A stretch of 64,000 nucleotides of DNA from Anthoceros angustus (taxonomy: Eukaryota > Plantae > Anthocerotophyta), in contig MU008153.1 in assembly GCA_010909165.1 (NCBI GenBank), positions 372,001-436,000 on the forward strand, given 5' to 3'. Shown piece after piece: positions 1,609 to 20,812 of this stretch. Made by a program: the position numbers and the translations under genes. The notes beneath the pieces were generated by a model. That model worked only from the letters and a program-made list of their open reading frames with translations, did no database searches and was not told the DNA's origin. Each line of letters starts with the position of its first letter. Positions within the stretch are counted from its first letter, which is position 1.

Positions 1609-2543
1609 ATGTATGTGGGAACCGGCCCCTACCAGCAGATTGAGAAGTGGCTTCTTGTGTTGGAGCTCGAAAGCTGGTCTCTCCATACACAGATTGTGAT
1701 GGAGCTACTCTGCTCCTTGAGCACGTGCCATGGATCATACCCCATGGCAATCCCTTCACATGGCAGACGTGGCCCTACCAGTGGAGGCATAGCGGTCTCC
1801 AGCTCATGCTCATTCTCCAGCCGCTCAAGGCTATGGCTGCTGCTTCCAGGCAGAGGGACCAAGACGGCACCAAGAAGGCAGCAGGTGGCAGTAATTGCGG
1901 GATTTCTGCCTGTGGATCCCTGGTCACCTAATATTGATTCGCAGAGCGTCGCCTCGCAGCTCTTCGCTGTGTCATTGATCCCCTATCTCGGATTTCTCTA
2001 TCACATGACCCGGTCCAAGACTGCGCCTAAACTTACGCTCTTCGGATTCTACTTCCTCCTAGTGTTTGTAGGAGCCACGAGTACGTTTGTGTTTTTTTTT
2101 TGTGCGCTATGCGCAAGTGCTGGCCGTTTCGTTGTAGATTCCTACGCAATATCCTGAATGTGGCCAGACGCTTACTCGTTGTGTGATCGTTGTTTTGTGG
2201 ATGCATCTTGTGCCATCAGTACCTGCCGGCATTTACGGTCAGTGAATTTTTTGTGTCCCAGATCTGCCTGACCTGCTTCGTTTTCCTCCTGCAATTGCCG
2301 GTGGATGTATGTGATTCCTGCGGGTTCTGAAAAATATTTTTTTGGTTTGTCCTTGATGCAGCCAAGGTGCACTATGGGACATCCTTGTCAAATGTTGATT
2401 GGCTCCACGGGGGAGCTGAATTTTTCTTGACTCTCACAAATTTGTTCATAGTCATTGGTTTAAGACAAGCCTTACGAACGGTCCAGAGTAAGACTGGGGA
2501 ATCAGAGGTTGAGGAGAAGGACGCTATAGGATCACCTAAGTAG
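1609..2543 (+). CDS. DUF3593-family (probably plastid) membrane protein. Exons 1609(or 1699)-2080, 2220-2237, 2362-2543
   Basis: SQLFAVSLIPYLGFLYHMTRSKTAPKLTLFGFYFLLVFVGAT|IPAGIY|AKVHYGTSLSNVDWLHGGAEFFLTLTNLFIVIGLRQAL joins in frame over canonical GT-AG introns. Ser/Arg-rich N-terminus resembles a transit peptide. Start codon uncertain. Confidence 0.85.
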
Positions 2544-2960: not shown

Positions 2961-5737
2961 TTAAATGGTCTTGGTGCTTGAGGGGTCTGAGGGAGTCATG
3001 TTCAACAGAAAACGAGGCTGTGTCATGGTATGGAGGCATGTCAAGTTCAGCATGGCTGAGGAGAGTAAATCGAGATAGCTCACCAGAGGACTTCGTGGAT
3101 TCGTGACACAGCATTTTCTTGGACGGCTACCAAGGCTCATCAAGCTGCTGCCTGCTAACGTGCTAGGCGGTGCCATGACAGTCGGTGCTGACCTAGTAGA
3201 GTTGTGTCCTCCATCAGAAACGACTGAATTGCACGCAGACTTCGAGATGCGAGCAGAAACTGCCGCCAACTTCAAGTCCAGCTTTTCCAGAGAGGCTAGA
3301 ATGTTCTTCTCTTCTTCAGACAAAACTGGGCCTTCACCTGTGGCCATGCGTGGTGGTGCACAGTACTCCCTCGGTGGTAAGGCAGGAGGTGGCCTCTGAT
3401 CCTGAACTGCAAAGAAGGTCATCTGCTTCGGCATCCAGATCTCATCTGGCCTTGTGCCAGCGGAACTGCCTGGCGTGCTTGGTGTGGCTTTGGCACCAGA
3501 TTCGTGTTCAGGTCCCCTGGGAAGCAAGGATTCCTTGCTCCTCGGATTGCTCAGTTGTCGAGGTTGAGCTTCTCTGGAAGGTTTGCCTTGCTGATCCTCC
3601 GAGGTGTGCCTTGACCTTTCACTTATCGTGGTAGAGGGTTGTGTTGCTCTTGCAGGTGTCATTTGTCGGTCTCCAGATGTGTCCCTGGCATGCTCGTGGT
3701 GTGTGACAGACTGTTTTGTTTGCATCTCCTGAGCTGTTCCCCTGGAAACCTCACAGCTGCTGACGGGCTGAGGCAGCGGGGGTGACCTGAAGTGCCCAAC
3801 TTCGTTCCCCTGTCTGTACATTTGATGACTCATGTTGAGGAGTCGAGGTACAGATGGCTGCCCCATCTGAGAATTCTGCATAGCTGGATATGGCATGGAA
3901 TGTATAGAAGGTGGCTGCTTCCGGTGTAAGGGACCCTGCGCTTCCCACCCAATCTCCCAGGCTTTGGATTGCAGGGGTCTCGTTTCATTACTCGAGAATG
4001 CATGTGCATCCTCAGTTGTTTTTCCTCTGGAAGTATGGCGCTCTGTGTGTATTTTGAAGCTCTCGTGGGCATGCAGCTGTTGATTTGGAAACCAGTTTTG
4101 CATTGCATCATTGCTTACATTGATCTGTCCTTGGTCTCCTCGAGCCCTCTTGTAGCCTTGTTCATCGGAAGGAGAGACGCAGTAAGCAGTCAAGGCTGCA
4201 ACTGCTGAGTTGTACTGTTCTTCACCTCTGCAGAAGTTGGAGAGCTGGACAGTCATCGCCGTGTTGTGCACTTTGATAGTACCTTGGTCGTCGTTTTGTG
4301 AGCAGGTACACTCGTCCAGAGCAACATGTGGTTCATGCTTTTGGCGCTTTTCACTTTCCTGTGTGAGCTGTGACCGACCGTCTGTCTCCACGGTGTCGAT
4401 CTCTTCACCATCCTCAATATCTAGGGCTTCTGGCTGGTTGCAATCTTCAAGGCGAGACTGAATGGCAGTGACCTCTGCAATCAACCTCGCTGTAGCAGCT
4501 TCATTTGCAAGTCTAGCTTTGACTATCTCCTCGCGGAGATAACTTGCTTCCCTATTAAATCCTTGTGCTGTACCAGATATGTCTGCTACTTCTCCCCTTG
4601 AACCTGAAGACCTCTGATCTTCTCCAGGTGAAGCACAGTTACATGCCATACCATTTCTCGAGTTGGCTATCGAATTTGACGGTGAGGTTGATCTTGACAC
4701 AAACACTTGCTGGGAGCAGTCAAGAATAGAGGCCGCCTCGGCCTCGAAGAACTCGTGCTCCTTTTCATAGCATGGACCATCCTGATTTGTGTTCTTCTCT
4801 GCGTAGGCCTTCTTCGAGAATCCCATGTTCAAAACCTTGGGTGATGCGAAAGTGTTAGAGTAGGCGATTAGGCTACTTGCAGTTGTTGTGATTGATGACA
4901 CAGTCACCGAGTCATCTACTGCTGGAGTGATGTGCTGAAAATTCCTGTGCACATAGTACCCGTCCTCGTCTAACTCTAGCTTTGAGTAATCTATGGGACC
5001 GCAACTCAGATGCGAATCAAGCTCGTATGCATCACGAGCACTTTCTGTCCAAGATTCGCTGTAGTCGTGTGCAGAAGAAGCTGCATGGTGCTCTTCAGAT
5101 TCGAAGCTCTCCTTCCGCTTACTGTTAAGGCTGTCGCAGGTGAAGTAAGTTCGAAATGAATCGCAAGCATTAAACAAACAATAACACGATGATGGACTCA
5201 CAAAATTTCAATACTGTAAGAAGAGGCTTACGGGTTCGAGCGTGTGACGTTCATAGTTCTCAAAGCATGCGGATGCAAGGTGATTTTGCCCCCAGTTGCG
5301 AGGTGATTCGTTGGGGGCCCTGCTTTAGCGATTACCCTGATCCTGTCATCAATATCCCTCTCCTCTCTGTATACTGAAGAATTCCACCTCGGTTTCTTAT
5401 GGCCGCCTTTCTCCTGCTTGCTGCAACCGCGTTGTGCCTTTGAATTCGAAGTGGCTGAATTTTTTACAGGAGTCTGCAGAGCGGAGTGGATGTACCCTGC
5501 CAGCCTTGCTCGTTCTTTCCTTCGCAGCTCTAATATCTCCTGGGCCTCCCTCTTCTCAGACTGCTCCCTTTCCAGACGAACCTCTTGCCATTTCCTACAT
5601 AGGTTGTCGACACCACGATTTGGCTTGCAGGCTTTGCTTTCTGAATCTAACGGAAAGAGACGACAGAAAGGCAGCAAAGGACAACAGAAGACATAGCATT
5701 TGCAAGCCTTCCATACCGGTGTCTCGAAGCAGTGCAC
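2961..5737 (-). CDS. Large low-complexity/coiled-coil protein of unknown function. Intron 5231-5131 joins ORFs 5228-5737 and 2961-5201
   Basis: 746-aa open frame. GTAAGC donor at 5231 and CAG acceptor at 5133-5131 give a phase-2 in-frame join. True start and 3' end not resolved. Confidence 0.6.
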
Positions 5738-6632: not shown

Positions 6633-8215
6633 ATGAGAATGTCTTCAAAGTTATGGGTGTCTTGGGGTGTATTTTTTTCATTGTTCTTGTGCACAACTCT
6701 TTTATATGAAGTGAAGCTTATTGGGGCTCAACTATCACCTAACCCTCCAAATCTTCCAGGTTTTCAATTTCCATCACCTGGGATTTCTATTCCTAAACTT
6801 CTTACTCAACCTTTCTGTACCAATGAAGTTGCATATCCAAGTTGTCCAGCAGTTACTACATTTGATTTAATAGACCTTCGATTCTTCGTTGGGACATGGT
6901 ATGAAATTGGGAGGACGGGACGAAGCAAACTCCAAAATGAGGCAGGACAAAATTGTCAACAAGTCAATTATACTTTAGTTAACGTTGGAATTATTGGAGA
7001 ATCATCCAGTCAGCTGAAAGTGGTGAACAAAGCTGTGCAAGTTACAGGCCCTGTCGCTACTTTTGGGTTAAAATCTATTGGAAGTGGAACAAGGAGAGTG
7101 TGCAATGCAGCTAAGAAAATATGCGACCTACTTGGTCCAACTGCACAAATTACACAAACTAGTGCTCAAGTAAGTCAATTGTATGTGCCACTTTCATAAA
7201 ATCATTTGATGTACCTAATATGTATTGTCTATACTCAAATTATATAATTTATTTATTATTAAAAATACTACAGCTTGGAACACTTGCCGCATCATTGGCT
7301 CTGGTACACCCAGTAGAAGCAGCTGCTCTATCGAATGCATCTTTGAAGATAACCGCCAAAGGCCAACAAATTCAAGCATCTCTCGATTTTCTTGCTAAAA
7401 ACGTCACTATCATTCAAGAATTAGCTTTACACACAAGTGACAACAATAGTACTAGAGATGTTATAGTGAACAACCTCCAAACATCGATATCTGCAATTCG
7501 TGATATCATCACCAATATTTCCTCACTTGTTTCTCAAGTGAGTGATGCTCGGACAGATGTATTACAGGTACATCCACCTCACTGAATTTATCAAAATTTT
7601 ATTGGGATGAGAAATACTTATCAATATTTAATTGAATGTGGTCACAACCTACTTGTGCAGGTTGCTTCTTCATTGTTAGCTCCAAATCCAAGTAAAGGTA
7701 TTGATCCTCCACCATTTGAATTAATTGGCCAATTATGGAAAGCAGTGGTGGAACTTAGTAGCCAAGAACAAGAAATTCTAGCAAAGGCAACGAAGATTCG
7801 TGTAAGCTTGGCTAGCATTGATGTTGCTTCAGGCTTACTCAATCTTGACCAAAGCAACCAAACCACAGTTGTAACTCAAGTTGGATCAGCTGTGCAAAAT
7901 ATTACATCATATGGAAAGCTCAATGTAACCTTACCTAATCAAACTAATGTGTCCAAAGAATCTCCATTTTGGATTTTGGCTTTGGATGGTATACCTAGCC
8001 AAGGATATCAATCTGCTTTGACATATTCTTGCACTGAAAGTGCAAATGGAGATATAAGAAAAACATTATCCATACTTTCGAGGAACACCACATTAGCACA
8101 AAACACTCTTACTGGATATCTCCAAACCGCTATAGCTTTTGGATTTAGTTTTGATTGTGAAGACCCTCTTATTTTGAACAATCAAGACCCTTCATGCGTT
8201 GCAGCCATAGCTTGA
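6633..8215 (+). CDS. Secreted ApoD/Blc-like lipocalin with a large central insertion. Exons 6633-7169, 7274-7567, 7661-8215 (~460 aa)
   Basis: Hydrophobic signal peptide; SCR1 motif FVGTWYEIG; C-terminal SPFWILALD..YQSALTYSC and LSILSRNTTL (SCR2/SCR3-like); terminal Cys; phase-0 GT-AG introns. Confidence 0.75.
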
Positions 8216-9686: not shown

Positions 9687-12600
9687 CTTGGCTGAGGAGG
9701 TTTATGGAGTCGTGCTGGAGCGGTGTTCAGGGAGTGGTGTTCTCAAGGGTTTTGGAGCGGTGAGCGGTGTTGTCAAGGGTCTTCTATATATGGTCTTTTC
9801 CAGGGTCTTCTCCAGGTCTTTTTACATGGCTCCCCAGTATGATGCGGGCCACCCAATCTACGCCTATCAAGGACACCCCTTGCCCGGTCTACTCTCAGCT
9901 TTGCTCTGGGGTCAAGGGGGTGAAATGTCACATTGGGCACAAGCACAAAGATTTCGACAAGACTACTTGGGAGGCACAAGTACGGCTTGCTTCTTCTTCC
10001 GGCGCAGCGGCTCACCCAATCCTCTTCCGGCAGCTCCCTTGGGCGCCGGGTCTGGGAGTGGCAGGCGGTCCAACCACTGGCGTTGTTTCACACTCGTTTC
10101 CCGAGCCCCCGTCTTTTTCGGCGGCTCCCGAGGCGTCTTCACGATGATGTTCGCCTTACGTACCGCCTTCCATTGGATCGCCTTGCGCGGGACCCCGGGG
10201 ATGAGGAGGCTTGGACTCTTTTCCTTTTCCTTCCTACATGGTGTCTTCGGCGCTCTAGAGGCGGTTCTTCGGGCCGTAGGGTGGTGGCTTCTCGCCTCCG
10301 CCGCTTTCGGGCGAGGGATTGGGAGGCTCTACAAGAGGAGAATCTTTTGGCGGCAAGATCTAGGTTGGGGTCGGCCAAGGACAACCAGGTTTGTCCGGAC
10401 CCTGGTAAGGCGTGTCTCCGAAGGTGTCATATGTTGGGTCGGAATGGTGAGTACGTGCGGGCCGCTAGGGCTTTACGCCCGGAGCCGGTGCCGGCCTTCG
10501 AGGACACCATCGCTGCGCTCCGTGCCCTTCATTTGGCCCCCAGTGACAGCATTCCACAGGATACCTTCGACTTCGTGCCCGAGGAGCTTTTTTGTCTAGA
10601 CAGGGCAGTCTTTGGTCGGGCCCTCTCCACTGCCCCCCGACTCTCCTCGGGTGGTCTGTCAGGGACAGTTTATGACCACCTTCGAGATTATTTTCCCCAG
10701 AGGATCCATCTAGTGGTTATTTAGAGCTTTTCTTTCTGGCGGCGGCTGTGGCCAGAGGCGAGGTCCCTCGCAGGATCTCCCAGGTCTTAGGGGCTTGCAG
10801 GTTACTAGCTTTGGAGAAACCTACGTCAGGGGTGCGCCCTATTGCTGTCGGAGAGGTGTTCCTGCGCCTCATTAGCCGCAGCATTGCGATTCAACTTCGG
10901 GAGCACTCATAACTCCAGGGGGTTGTGAGTCTGCGGCCTTTGGTATTCAGGCAGTCCTTGAGTCTCGCCCACATTGGGTTGCTCTACAGGTAGATGTCGA
11001 GAATGCCTTCAACACTGTGTCTAGGGCCGTCATTTTCTAGGAACTCAATGACGCAGGAGGGCACCTAGGGGGCCTCATTCCATTTGTTCGCTCCTTCTAC
11101 GATTCTCCATCCAATCTCTACTATCAACATAGTCCAGCTACGGAAGGCGTTTCGGTTCTCCACTCGGCGACGGGCACAAGGCAAGGGGATCCATTGGGAG
11201 GCACGCTCTTCACCATGGCGCACTTCAGGGCACTGTCCTCCACAACCTCTGCAGTTCGGGAGTGCCTTTTCCCATCCGTGGCTGACGATACCCATATCCT
11301 CGGGCCAGGGGACAAGGTGAGGGCTGCATTTGATCTCTTCTCCTTGGAGCTCTCCCGTATAGGATTAAGGGTCAAGATCAATAAGTACAGGGTGTGGTCC
11401 CCTTCCGGCAATACATCCCCTCTTCACTATCCAGGGGGGGATATTATTTCTCCGCAAGGGCTTCGGGTCCTCGGAGTTCCGCTGGGTCCCCCGGACTTTA
11501 TTCAAGGGTGTGTGGACGTGGCTCTGGAAGAAGACATGGCTCACATTGGGGACCTTTCACAAATTGGGGACCCTCAGGTTGCGTTTGGTACTTTGTCTTC
11601 CTGCTTCGCGCATCGACCATGTTATCTTACCAGGACGGTTGTCCCCGGCCTTTTTATCAAGCTTGAGGCATTTTGATAGGCAGGTTATGTAGGCGCTTGG
11701 GGACATTATAGGTCCCGGCACCTTCGAATGCGCTGACGGTGACTTGGCGCGGAAACAAGCATCATTGCCAGTGGCCTTTGGTGGCACTGGCTTGCTGGCC
11801 ATGGAGGCCTCATCTCCGGCAGCTTTCCTCGGGAGTTGGGCCCTCTCTGCCCCAATTTTGGCCTCTCGATTCTTAATGCAGGACTCCCCCCTTCTGGAAG
11901 CCTTCGTCTCGAGTGTTGAGGAGGGGGCCTTCCCCTTGCAGATCTCTCTCAGGCGGGCTAGGGACTCCCTTTCCTTAGAGGCTAGGGAAGACATGCCTCT
12001 ATGTTCCTGTTCGGGGAAGGGGGCAGGCTCCTGGCTTTTGGCTCGGCCTTGCATTCCGGCGTTCCGAATCGCATTAGCATCCTTTTCGACCGCGATGAGG
12101 GTCCGCCTCGGTTTGGCTCATCCTCTGGCCTCTTCTCTTTCCACGTGCAGTTGTGGAGCTGACATCGACGATTCCGAATCCCATTTGGCCCGTTGTCCTG
12201 TGGAGGGGCAACGTATTGCTACGCATGATGCCGTTCGCGACGTCATGTTTTCGATAACTATGGAGAGTGGTTTTTTTTTTATACCGGGAGTGCCCATATA
12301 CATTGCGTAATGGCGTGTCACTCAGGGCAGACCTTTTTTATACTAGGGGAGAGCAAATTTATATCGCTGATGTGGTTGTCACGGATCCCACGAGAGACTC
12401 TATAAGCGAGCATGTCATCATCAACCCCCCGGGCTGGGAGGCGGAAGGATGCGCAAAAAGCAAGACTCATAAGTACTCTCCTATGCAAGACGGCCATGTT
12501 TTCATCCCCCTCGCCCTCGAGACTCATGGGGCTATGGGCAAGGGCTTCTCTAGGTTAATTAAGGAGTGTGCAAAAGTCTATCACAGCCACAGGAATTGGA

Positions 12601-15745: not shown

Positions 15746-18741
15746 TCACGTCTGTAACAGAGAATGGAAAGCCTCTTGGGGGATATCAACAGAGCCCACG
15801 CGTTTCATCCGTTTCTTCCCTTCCTTCTGCTTTTCCAACAGCTTTCTCTTTCGGGTAACGTCTCCTCCGTAGCACTTGGCCAGCACGTTTTTCCGCATTG
15901 CAGAGATCCTGGGAAACCATTGCAGAAGGTCAGTCAGAATGGTCTGAAACAGTCGCAGGGGAAGGGAATGCAGGAAATAGACGTACGTTTCCCGAGCTAT
16001 GACTTTAGAGCCTATGGCTGCTTGGATGGCAACTTCGAACATTTGCCTGCATCAAACATATACAGGAGGAGATCAGCATCACCACTAACACCGAGAGCAG
16101 CACGGGATGAATGTTGTAACTTATCAGCCTGGGCAGCAGGGCACGTATGGACGACTCGCTAACCTGTCAATTACTTTCTTGAGCTTTTCAACGAGCTCAC
16201 GGCCGATGCGCTGAGATTTTGACCGATGCACGATCGTAGCAAGGGCATCAACGACTTGACCATTCAGCATGACATCAAGCTTCACAAGATCAGCAGCTTG
16301 ATATCTGCGAGGTTTGGTCAAACCGCAAATGATCAGAACGCCGCCATTGACCATCAAGAGCTTCACTGGCGACCAACTGAGAGAACGGATAGGACTTACC
16401 CTGCTTCTTCATAGTCAAAGGATGCATAGCCTGAAGTCATTCCCTTCAGCTGATTGTAGAAGTCGACCACAACCTCGCGCAAAGGAAGCTTATACTTTAA
16501 CATAGCCCGCTGTCTGGGTGAAGTGGTGCCGCAAGGAGATCAGTTCATTTGGAAGATGAGTAAGCCGGAGATAGCACGGATCAAAGAGACATACCCGTCA
16601 ATGAAGGTGTGTTCGGTTTGCTCACCCCTCCTCTCCGAGCAGAGAGTGATTAAACTTCCAATATACCTGGATAGGTAGAGCCTGGAAGCTTAGGGCAGGG
16701 CTTCCTGAGACTTATGAAGCATCAGAGTGACAAGGGCACAACCAACAGTTCAGAAACGAGTGCGCCATGGGGCTTACTCACTGGGAGTGATGATGGTTGC
16801 ATTCACTGTTGGTTCCCAGCATGTGACCAGTCGTTTCCCAGAACCTGACGACAAGCTTGCTGGGTTTTGCACAGTTATCTTGCTGCACAGCCGAAGGGTA
16901 TAAGGCGTCTGATCTCAAACGGTCAACACCATACAGCAGAGCTATTGCACCCGGAAGGCCTACAGAGGTCAAAGAAGAAGTACCTTCCATCATCATACTC
17001 AAAAATGTAAGGGACAGTTGGATGGGTAGTTATCACTCGGGCTCCATGCTCCTGTTGATCCAAAAGAGAAGGGCATGCTTGAAAAGAGTGGGATGCAGCA
17101 AAATGTGCTTTGAGATATGCTTATATTGGCTCACTTGTTCTAACCGCTGATGAAAGACATCCATATGAAGTAATCCTAAGAACCCACATCTGTCACAGGC
17201 AGAGGAGAGAGAAGTGTGAGCAACCAATCAGTCCATGCAGGTTGGAAGACACAAAAATCTGATGCTGAAGGAGGGTTGAGGTGCAAGGTTAGTGTGAACG
17301 ACAAAATTCAACCTGAATCCTATCCCTAGAGCTCCACTAGTTTCTTTCGTCACAGAAACACTTGCATCGTTGCACGTGAGCCTTTCAATGGCTGCACATA
17401 GTGCATCATAGTCTGACCCATCAGCTGGATAGACTCCTGCAAATACCATGTGCTTTGCTGGCTTGAATCCTGCATGATAGAATAGCCAAATGTAATCATC
17501 AGATAAGTTCATATTCATCCAAAAGCTACAATAACAGTGGTGAGCAAACCCTACCAGGCAGAGGTTCCACAACACTTCGAACACGATGCAATGTGTCCCC
17601 TATACGGGCCTCTTGTGTAGAGCGCATTCCCGTGACAAGATATCCCACCTGTCCTGTCAATAGAATGCCTGTTGCTTTGAGCTCTGGATGCATAATTCCT
17701 ACATCCATGGCTTCGTAATCCTGCCCAGTAGAAGCTGATGAAATTTTCTCTCCTTTCCTCAGCGCCCCGTCTACAACTGCAACATGGCAGATAACACCCT
17801 TGTACTCATCATAGTAGGAATCCAGTAAAAGCATTCTGAGGGGTGCGTCTGTTGAGCCCCTTGGCTGTGGGATGCGCTCAATGACAGCAGGCAAAACATG
17901 CGGTAGACCTTCTCCGGTTTTTGCAGATGTTAGCAGAACATCATCAGGATTGATGTCAAATATGTTCTTCAGCTGAGTCTTCACACCGTCAGGATCAGCA
18001 TTGGGCTGATCAATCTTGTTTATGACAGGAATGATGGTGAGATCAGCCTCAAATGCCAGATAGAAGTTAGCCACCGTCTGAGCTTGAACCCCTTGTGAGG
18101 CATCCACTAGAAGCAGGACCCCCTGACATGCTGCCAGAGATCTGGACACCTCATAGCTGAAATCCACATGCCCCGGCGTGTCAATAAGATTAAGCAAATA
18201 TCGAGCCTTAGAACCATCAGCCGCAGAGTAGTTGAAGAACATGGTGGCTGTCTGGGCTTTCACTGTTATCCCTCTTTCCCTTTCCACCTACTTCAAACAA
18301 GAAACTCGATCAACAACCAACTCTTCAGAAAAACCAACCCAAGCTCCCAGGATTGCCGCGCAGTCACCACAAACAAAAATCACTGGAATTCCCACACATT
18401 CCTACCTGCAGCTTGTCGAGATACTGAGGCTGCCCAAGCCCTTTCCGAATCGTCCCAGTGAGCTCCAGCAGCCGATCGGCAAGTGTGGACTTGCCATGAT
18501 CCACATGTGCTATGATTGAAAAATTTCTGATCAGCGCAGGAGGGTACTGCGTGAGTTCCAAGTCATCCCTGCCATGCGCTTCTTGAAAAGCAGCAGAGGA
18601 GCACGATCTGCACCACAAGCTGGACCACGTCCGCACATCCTCCCCCCACAGCCTCCTCGCTGGGAGATGTGAGGCAGCCTCCAAAAATCTGACTGCCTGC
18701 TTAGAACAGTGTCGGATGATCGACACGCCCATGAATGCCAT
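15746..18741 (-). CDS. GUF1: Translation factor GUF1/LepA (EF4), mitochondrial type. 11 exons: 18741-18406, 18287-17555, 17469-17313, 17189-17135, 17051-16984, 16882-16778, 16666-16595, 16513-16400, 16304-16164, 16046-15987, 15908-15746
   Basis: [66 protein letters not shown] and [31 protein letters not shown]. All introns GT-AG and in phase. N-terminal presequence-like extension. Confidence 0.96.
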
Positions 18742-19813: not shown

Positions 19814-20812
19814 ATGGAGGCTTGTTCGCAGTCCCTGGCGCGTGTCTCGCCGCTGTGCTGCAACCTGCGGGTAAAATCCTCCAGTTTGAGCGGCGGCGGC
19901 GCTGGTTTGTCCTTCGTGCGCCTTCCGATTAATGTTACTACTCCTTTAAGAGGAGAAACTGTGGAGCGGAGGAGCGGGAATGCGAGCTTACGGCGAGAGA
20001 GTGTGAGGACCAGAGCGTTCCAGGAGGCGGAGGAGGAGGAGATCTTGCAGGCGCCGTCATCTTCGTCGCGGGAGGAGGAGATTGCGCAGGCGCCGTCATC
20101 TTCGTCGCAGGAGGATGATGCGAGAGTGCAGCGGATCCATACTGTGGAGGATTTCGATGCGGCGTTGAAGAAGGCGGGGAAGAAGCTTGTGGTGGTAGAG
20201 TACGCGACCACCCATAGCTCCAACAGCCAGCAAATCTACCCGGCTGTGGTGAGCCTGAGCCGGAGCTGCCAGGATGTGGAGTTCCTGCTTGTGATGGGAG
20301 ACGAGTGCGAGGACACCAGGTCGCTGTGCAGCCGCGCCGGGGTGAAGAAGGTGCCGCATTTCGTTTTCTACAAGAACCAGGAGAAGATTCATGAGGAGCA
20401 AGGCATCGACGCCGACATGCTGGCGGGAGATGTGCTCTACTATGGCGACCCCGATGTTCCGGTGCGGCACCTCAAGGGCGCGCAAGAGCTGGAGGCGTTT
20501 CTGGCAGAGACGGCCAAGGAGGACCGGCTGGTAGTGGTGGACGTGGGACTGAAGCATTGCGGGCCCTGTGTCAAGGTCTACCCTACTGTCATCAAGCTGG
20601 CCAAGAATATGAAGGGTTCTGTGGCCTTTGCGCGGATGCATGGGGACGAGAACGAGGAAACTATGCAGTTGATGAAGAAGATGGAGGTGGTGGAGGTTCC
20701 TACTTTTCTCTTCATCAGACAGGGCAAGCTGTGCGGGCGGTATGTTGGCTCTGGGAAAGGAGAGCTCATTGGGGAAATACTAAGATATCAAGGAGTCCGG
20801 GTCACGTATTGA
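19814..20812 (+). CDS. CDSP32: Chloroplast two-domain thioredoxin CDSP32 (intronless)
   Basis: Transit-like N-terminus; two Trx modules; HCGPCVKVYPTVIKL active site; C-terminus GSGKGELIGEILRYQGVRVTY. Confidence 0.95.
   Translation: MEACSQSLARVSPLCCNLRVKSSSLSGGGAGLSFVRLPINVTTPLRGETVERRSGNASLRRESVRTRAFQEAEEEEILQAPSSSSREEEIAQAPSSSSQEDDARVQRIHTVEDFDAALKKAGKKLVVVEYATTHSSNSQQIYPAVVSLSRSCQDVEFLLVMGDECEDTRSLCSRAGVKKVPHFVFYKNQEKIHEEQGIDADMLAGDVLYYGDPDVPVRHLKGAQELEAFLAETAKEDRLVVVDVGLKHCGPCVKVYPTVIKLAKNMKGSVAFARMHGDENEETMQLMKKMEVVEVPTFLFIRQGKLCGRYVGSGKGELIGEILRYQGVRVTY

Follow-up and report, generated by a model that had tools for sequence, protein, structure and literature searches.

The gene at positions 6633-8215 (plus strand) of a 64,000-nucleotide stretch of the hornwort Anthoceros angustus (contig MU008153.1, positions 372,001 to 436,000; the whole of this stretch is termed the window) very probably encodes a secreted lipocalin of the ApoD type, in which a rigid up-down four-helix bundle of approximately 200 residues splits the barrel between strands C and D. 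Lipocalins are textbook single-domain proteins, and engineers vary the four loops at the open end of their barrel to obtain anticalins; the C-D loop is one of these four. The fuller explanation favoured here, with moderate confidence, combines this architecture with a function as an extracellular carrier and with a position of the bundle at the pocket entrance.

The gene was modelled as three exons with a total of 461 codons and intact open frames, the GC content of the exons (38-40%) contrasting with that of the AT-rich introns (22% and 32%). A homologue with the same three exons and with introns at the same codons was identified on a 15-kb Logan contig (L001), the identities between the two genes being 51% for exon 1, 40% for exon 2 and 57% for exon 3. 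The parts of the window gene are as follows:

6633-7169, plus strand: exon 1, 179 codons followed by GT at 7170; it encodes the signal peptide, a proline-rich linker, an N-terminal extension, strands A to C and the start of the insert.
7170-7273, plus strand: intron 1, 104 nucleotides, GT..AG, phase 0, 22% GC; an intron is found at this place in L001 too.
7274-7567, plus strand: exon 2, 98 codons lying wholly within the helical insert, with the same boundaries in L001.
7568-7660, plus strand: intron 2, 93 nucleotides, GT..AG, phase 0, 32% GC.
7661-8215, plus strand: exon 3, 184 codons followed by TGA; it encodes the end of helix 3, helix 4, strands D to H, helix A1, strand I and a cysteine-containing tail.

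Translation may actually begin at the second ATG (6639), as it does in the L001 homologue.

For the assignment to the lipocalins, each window exon was searched separately and not as part of the joined protein. With Pfam, residues 80-126 of exon 1 matched positions 1-44 of PF08212 (E 0.061) and exon 3 matched PF00061 (E 0.058), the scores of 13.7 and 14 bits lying below the gathering thresholds of 24 and 23, and Pfam and NCBIfam returned only sub-threshold lipocalin or Blc matches for single exons. In phmmer searches, exon 1 (residues 70-126) matched the lipocalin Per a 4 over residues 3-57 (E 3.2e-5) and ApoD over residues 5-73, while exon 3 (residues 55-183) matched Sandercyanin over residues 52-168 (E 0.004). 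The language-model features of exon 3 pointed to lipocalin-clan clusters only, including those of the violaxanthin de-epoxidase (VDE) type.

The homology was far clearer at the level of the family. A profile of 14 homologues matched human ApoD (E 1.4e-19) in two abutting stretches, profile positions 39-108 corresponding to ApoD residues 5-64 and positions 306-396 to residues 61-148. Approximately 197 extra profile positions are therefore placed at ApoD residues ~61-64, which is the C-D hairpin. Matches of the profile to ApoD and Sandercyanin were better than those to bacterial Blc (E 6.5e-11) and the temperature-induced lipocalin (TIL) of Arabidopsis (E 4.3e-8), and PF08212 was matched by 12 of the 14 full-length homologues at E values of up to 0.1, the best being 1.2e-12. 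The single compact domain of ~160-200 residues that typifies lipocalins is absent from this family, owing to the bundle of about 200 residues between strands C and D; this alters the domain count and not the homology of the barrel.

The sub-threshold scores of the single exons could also be taken to mean that no split lipocalin exists, the resemblance being due to chance, or the locus representing two genes, a pseudogene or a mis-assembly. This explanation can be given almost no weight. It is opposed by the two abutting stretches of the ApoD profile match, by a structural match to ApoD with a Z score of 21.6, by spliced contigs from a relative, and by the presence of the architecture in at least 11 named species, as well as by the open frames, the canonical splice sites and the signs of purifying selection in the gene itself.

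The signature motifs of the lipocalins were looked for in the window protein, and the first and third were located. The motif GTWYEIG of the first structurally conserved region (SCR1) has aligned counterparts in Per a 4 (GTWYEL) and ApoD (GRWYEI), with the glycine being invariant and the tryptophan the majority consensus across the family alignment. In the SCR2 region, LDG....GYQSALTYSC lies opposite TDYDNYALVYSC of Sandercyanin in the alignment and corresponds to it in part: Asp, Tyr-x-x-Ala-Leu and Y-S-C are retained, the T and the Y of T-D-Y are changed, and five residues are added. For SCR3, ..LSILSR is paired with SIVSR in Sandercyanin and with ILAR in ApoD, its arginine being nearly invariant across the family. 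Furthermore, the cysteines encoded at 6843, 6954, 8030 and 8195 align with the four cysteines of both ApoD disulfides, one of which links the N-terminal part to strand G and the other strand B to the C-terminal part.

The fold of a whole protein was predicted using AlphaFold2 (AF2) for the Marchantia paleacea homologue P0004 (436 amino acids), with an alignment of 34 rows in which the exons of the window gene and of L001 formed separate rows. The resulting model (predicted local distance difference test, pLDDT, 87.4; predicted TM-score, pTM, 0.84) contains strands A (64-72), B (83-95) and C (103-114), followed by five helical segments (118-145, 150-165, 170-212, 218-262 and 272-312) and then by strands D to H (325-387), a helix (394-406) and strand I (417-419). 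An eight-stranded barrel with a helix and a ninth strand is thus predicted for this homologue. The best Foldseek match of the model was ApoD (2hzq; TM-score 0.84 normalised by ApoD), with both halves aligned, and VIA-align superposed 163 of 166 residues on ApoD with a root-mean-square deviation of 2.2 Å and 27% identity (Z 21.6), followed by Sandercyanin, Blc, crustacyanin, bilin-binding protein and TIL; the Atlas search also gave ApoD clusters. As the model superposes on ApoD across both halves, these can be considered to form one barrel. The exons of the window gene tile the model and the family alignment without a gap in any secondary-structure element, and the elements of the model, mapped onto the window through alignment A2, give the following positions for the barrel and its surroundings:

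6633-6728, plus strand: predicted signal peptide of ~32 amino acids, called from the window sequence itself, with cleavage expected after ..LIGA and before QLSP.
6816, 6843 and 6954, plus strand: cysteines of exon 1.
6891-7040, plus strand: N-terminal barrel part, consisting of strand A with the SCR1 motif GTWYEIG (6891-6911), the omega loop, strand B and strand C.
7877-8176, plus strand: C-terminal barrel part, consisting of strands D (7877-7897), E (7916-7933), F (7940-7993), G (8003-8038) and H (8054-8080), helix A1 (8099-8137) and strand I (8168-8176).
8024-8032, plus strand: YSC, in strand G.
8066-8083, plus strand: the SCR3 motif ..LSILSR.

An original prediction, made from the letters of the stretch, had described a signal peptide, a proline-rich linker, a cysteine and GTWYEIG in exon 1, and these were found where it had placed them. 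It had also proposed that the first strands end at about 7040 and that the barrel resumes from about 7860 onward, in agreement with the mapped end of strand C at 7040 and start of strand D at 7877, and that the protein is a secreted lipocalin carrying a helical bundle in a barrel hairpin. The adjoining of the two halves on ApoD and the C-D bundle of the homologue model bear out this proposal, and the failure of the halves to assemble into one eight-stranded barrel, which would have spoken against it, was not observed in the model of P0004. Its observation is accordingly confirmed, and its structural interpretation is supported. The roles that it suggested, in lipid storage or transport or in interaction with a symbiont, are possibilities only, and no evidence of a connection with a cyanobiont came to light.

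The insert was examined separately. Its parts were mapped onto the window as follows:

7050-7843, plus strand: region encoding the insert (genomic, including both introns), mapped from helices 118-312 of P0004.
7050-7133 and 7146-7297, plus strand: helix 1, in two segments.
7101-7124, plus strand: cysteine pair C-x2-A-[RK]-x2-C, in helix 1.
7310-7438, plus strand: helix 2.
7454-7681, plus strand: helix 3.
7721-7843, plus strand: helix 4.

Both introns fall inside the region encoding the insert, and the insert is therefore not delimited by introns. The approximately 200 residues between the halves, the spanning of both introns and the C-x6-C pair had all been foreseen. The insert had further been called rich in Ala, Leu, Ile and Gln, which is correct as far as it goes (A 12.6%, L 11.6%, I 9%, Q 6.5%) and leaves out Ser and Thr (S 11.6%); V accounts for 8%. 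A separate fold of the insert, based on an alignment of this region, predicted an up-down four-helix bundle with helices of ~45 residues and a short break in helix 1 (pLDDT 92.2, pTM 0.87). Both ends of the insert lie on the same side of this model, as insertion into a hairpin requires.

Within the family alignment the insert is less conserved than the barrel, the mean frequency of the top residue being 0.37 in the former and 0.50-0.53 in the latter. Its best-conserved motif is L-D-x-L-A..V..I-Q.....L-S-Q..G, whose end lies in the loop joining helices 2 and 3. The cysteine pair of helix 1 is present in the window protein, in L001 and in most land-plant members, and is absent from the two full-length members of the Zygnematophyceae. 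Its cysteines lie at a spacing of seven residues on one face of a continuous modelled helix, which makes bonding between them impossible; on this model they may form bonds with other chains or other parts of the protein, or bind something else.

Structural comparison of the insert gave as its best match the designed maquette 6z0c (Z 17.2; 2.4 Å over 187 residues). Among natural bundles, AhlB was matched with a Z score of 13.4, plant inhibitors of pectin methylesterase (PMEI) and of invertase with 11.5-13.1, and others with 11-13, and Z scores of 11-13 are the usual range for unrelated helical bundles with this tool. No natural donor for the insert was found with Foldseek or VIA-align, which returned only designed or generic bundles, and the Atlas language-model search with the insert gave no usable match. 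Matches of the helical part to sequences in the PDB (Mce/MlaD, designed coiled coils, syntaxin and chemoreceptors) were set aside as apparent matches of coiled-coil composition.

One alternative for the bundle is that it resembles an exchangeable apolipoprotein, being closed in solution and opening its amphipathic helices on lipid surfaces such as droplets, vesicles, or cuticular or spore-wall lipid. This would make it a lipocalin that docks on lipid surfaces, a single-chain analogue of ApoD on a lipoprotein particle. The helices are indeed amphipathic (hydrophobic moment 0.7-1.2 on family columns), faint Pfam matches were obtained to ApoLp-III (E 0.0075) and to Apolipoprotein A1/A4/E (E 0.072), and ApoD itself associates with high-density lipoprotein. 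However, each of these Pfam matches was produced by a single member and lies far under threshold. The inserts of the family contain 8-19% charged residues (D+E+K+R), 1.5-4.6% aromatic residues and 34-47% Ala, Ser, Thr and Gly, whereas exchangeable apolipoproteins are highly charged. The insert thus lacks a significant profile match to exchangeable apolipoproteins and their high charge, and no such structures occurred among its top fold matches; the very confident model of a tight bundle, structure searches that returned only generic or designed bundles, and conserved N-glycosylation sites on the bundle also argue against this alternative, which is considered unlikely.

A second alternative is that the bundle serves as a rigid stalk or docking handle for macromolecules (in oligomerisation, or in contact with a receptor or wall polymers), with the barrel being secondary or free of ligand. 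This would be in keeping with the long rod formed by helices of ~45 residues and with a fold like that of elongated extracellular bundles, namely the PMEI and invertase inhibitors and trypanosome surface receptors. It would also make use of the C-x6-C cysteines, whose inability to bond with each other leaves intermolecular bonds as a possibility. The Z scores for such bundles, however, fall in the range seen for unrelated helical bundles, and the barrel has retained its signature motifs and is more strongly conserved than the rest of the protein, which argues that the pocket is in use. A stalk function is thus rated as somewhat less probable again than the apolipoprotein-like behaviour.

Returning to the carrier function, the protein would be situated outside the cell or in the secretory pathway, where its barrel would carry a small hydrophobic molecule. 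Since the C-D loop borders the open end, the expected place of the bundle is the entrance to the ligand pocket, where it could act as a fixed module that shapes the opening or caps it, possibly with a second binding surface. The up-down topology makes the turn between helices 2 and 3 proximal to the barrel, and this turn, with the best-conserved motif of the insert, should therefore face the barrel. The omega loop nearby contains an invariant K, E and G, which likewise points to the pocket mouth. Such a role for the bundle is put forward tentatively, as it falls somewhat short of being probable. A bolder reading, which is speculative and rather improbable as a whole, has the barrel and the bundle working as one machine, in which the proximal loops gate the pocket and the cargo (for example a sterol, a pigment, or a wall or cuticle precursor) is passed to or from a second site in the bundle. 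This would be a lipid shuttle of ancient origin working outside the cell, older than land plants and later discarded by flowering plants, and the first natural lipocalin with a domain grafted into an anticalin-type loop.

Several points weigh against the favoured explanation. The fold was computed for P0004, which is 30-34% identical to the window exons, and not for the window protein. The position of the bundle at the pocket was derived from lipocalin topology rather than from coordinates. Ligand carriage, localisation and role are drawn from sequence and model, the L-S-Q motif has diverged in the window protein and in L001, and the signal peptide was called by eye and hydropathy only. The evidence of expression consists of contigs of a relative from a library that was only guessed to be RNA, although the spliced joints within them argue for RNA.

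These joints were recovered in a search of sequencing runs with the stretch, in which no run recorded as RNA was found among those listed and only contigs of a relative, carrying 5% of the words, were returned. In one run (X1), from a relative ~92% identical to the window, two contigs were informative on splicing. The first spans 6720-7169 and then continues directly at 7274, thereby omitting exactly the sequence of intron 1 (7170-7273). The second spans 7658-8159. In front of it stand 19 letters, 17 of which agree with the end of exon 2 (7546-7564), and after these come CAG and exon 3. As the contigs of X1 carry both joints (7169>7274 and 7567>7661), these are used as modelled in the relative. 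Two separate transcripts, which would have been at odds with the original prediction, are hence not indicated in that relative at least, each exon being joined to the next.

Selection was assessed by comparison of the window gene with L001. The proportion of nonsynonymous differences (pN) was lowest in the N-terminal part of the barrel (0.19), with values of 0.26 for the C-terminal part and 0.31 for the insert. That of synonymous differences (pS) was ~0.7, at which synonymous sites are saturated, with a value of 0.67 in the insert. These sequence comparisons indicate purifying selection over the full length of the protein, the insert being no exception.

The call of a signal peptide was based on a basic N-terminus, a hydrophobic core (mean Kyte-Doolittle hydropathy of 1.7-1.8 for residues 7-27) and a site of small residues, and the same layout was found in L001, where the region ends in ..TFA/Q. 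Eight N-x-S/T sites are conserved in position between the window protein and L001, with conserved sites being carried by the bundle. Judging from the pattern of these sites and of the cysteines, the protein is probably N-glycosylated and disulfide-bonded, as would be expected in the secretory pathway.

When exon 3 was searched exhaustively with HMMER, 28 representatives were recovered at E <= 0.001. Full-length members comprise 370-534 amino acids, with the region corresponding to exon 3 at the C-terminus and with the parts in the same order as in the window gene. The named species with annotated full-length proteins of this architecture, at least 11 in number, include the following:

Liverworts: Marchantia paleacea, Marchantia polymorpha (MPTK1_2g17690), Calypogeia fissa and Riccia fluitans.
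Lycophytes: Selaginella moellendorffii and Diphasiastrum complanatum.
Fern: Ceratopteris richardii.
Gymnosperm: Ginkgo biloba.
Zygnematophyceae: Closterium, Mesotaenium and Netrium.

No named angiosperm protein and no named moss protein was among the matches of the family searches. Species names were obtained from a word search with the family alignment, in which four of 8000 candidates were scored. A word-index protein search with exon 1 returned only a prokaryote-style open reading frame (ORF) call on L001, and the same search with exon 3 alone gave no match, its length window having shut out full-length relatives. The members from Selaginella and Riccia carry the UniProt label of a lipocalin-domain protein. 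The window gene is thus one further paralogue of a real and conserved family.

Some of the matches differed from this pattern. Three of ~250 amino acids (P0013, P0019 and P0024) were considered as relatives devoid of an insert and were rejected, as they are C-terminal fragments with helical sequence. Two butterfly gene models, which were the only matches from outside the family, were rejected as members, namely P0026 (Danaus chrysippus, 1380 amino acids) with up to 7 lipocalin-domain matches and P0028 (Leptosia nina, 3464 amino acids) with up to 18; these almost certainly fuse tandem genes for ordinary lipocalins resembling the bilin-binding protein. Shorter inserts, of 137 and 151 amino acids, were observed in P0006 (Ginkgo Gb_35276, 374 amino acids) and P0018 (Closterium, 370 amino acids), where helix 1 or parts of helices 2-3 are missing. 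This could be due to real variation or to an error in the gene models.

With regard to known systems, the family is closest to lipocalins of the ApoD type (2hzq, Sandercyanin, bilin-binding protein, insecticyanin and crustacyanin), with which it shares the full barrel and C-terminal helix, the G-x-W-Y-E-I of SCR1, the arginine of SCR3 and secretion. It differs from them in the C-D bundle of ~197 positions, the N-terminal proline-rich linker and four more conserved cysteines, and it occurs in plants and streptophyte algae and not in animals. TIL, the chloroplastic lipocalin (CHL/LCNP) and bacterial Blc belong to the same superfamily and have the same fold (Arabidopsis TIL, 8wb2, Z 17.8; Blc, Z 19.4); TIL, CHL and Blc are more distant from the family in sequence than ApoD. 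TIL has ~185 amino acids and lacks a signal peptide, CHL has a plastid transit peptide, and neither possesses a domain within the barrel. VDE likewise combines a plant lipocalin barrel (Z 17.1) with extra domains, but these lie at the N- and C-termini of an unbroken barrel in the thylakoid lumen, whereas here the domain lies within the barrel. Long up-down bundles (6z0c, the PMEI and invertase inhibitors, and components of ClyA-family toxins) have the topology and length of the insert, with ~10% identity to it and no sequence relationship; none of them is embedded in a beta-barrel.

Searches of the literature (for insertion-bearing lipocalins, the gene identifiers, and lipocalins of hornworts and Zygnematophyceae) returned a single preprint, on the clade of seedless-plant-specific lipocalins, or SLLs (bioRxiv 10.1101/2025.03.13.638958). 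SLLs are described there as a third group of plant lipocalins besides TIL and CHL, including Pp3c11_15530 and Pp3c1_13830, with a predicted signal peptide and an extracellular location. They occur in charophytes and seedless plants, are rare in vascular plants and have been lost from most seed plants (bioRxiv 10.1101/2025.03.13.638958). The same source describes them mostly as a Blc-like domain and does not mention an insertion. The hydrophobic N-terminal signal of the window protein and the distribution of its relatives from Zygnematophyceae to Ginkgo match this description. Members of the present family would also fall into the clade because they pass the PF08212 search of the preprint, and given this together with the same distribution, the family is likely to be the SLL clade itself. 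No published description of a lipocalin with an inserted helical domain was found in the literature searched. What is new is the insert and not the clade; the description of the protein as novel, made in the original prediction, consequently holds for the former and falls for the latter, whose members already carry a lipocalin-domain label and are probably SLLs.

The architecture would represent a natural and conserved insertion of a domain of ~200 residues in an open-end loop, kept since before the split between conjugating green algae and land plants. It would demonstrate that the lipocalin scaffold tolerates the grafting of a domain, and would provide engineers with a natural template. In addition, an uncharacterised family of secreted, putatively lipid-binding proteins is marked out in algae, bryophytes, lycophytes, ferns and Ginkgo; it is a candidate for cell-surface processes altered in seed-plant evolution. 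The presence of a homologue in M. polymorpha (MPTK1_2g17690) opens its function to study by knockout.

Two neighbours located upstream of the gene are common to the window and L001, these being a DUF3593 gene and a long opposite-strand ORF with no Pfam family:

1609-2157, plus strand (L001 310-964): upstream neighbour.
2961-5201, minus strand (L001 1891-3945): upstream neighbour.

Since these neighbours are kept between the window and L001, the lipocalin gene can be placed within a conserved syntenic block. A second copy of the gene was sought within the 64-kb window and none was found. Downstream, the region 9688-12310 is GC-rich (57%), contains several overlapping long ORFs and has the appearance of a degraded retroelement; a Pfam scan of two of its ORFs gave no match. 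Further along the window, an exon for a translational GTPase with an EF-Tu GTP-binding domain and domain 2, LepA/GUF1-like by eye, was identified at 17526-18287 (minus strand), and a gene for a thioredoxin-domain protein of 332 amino acids at 19814-20812 (plus strand).

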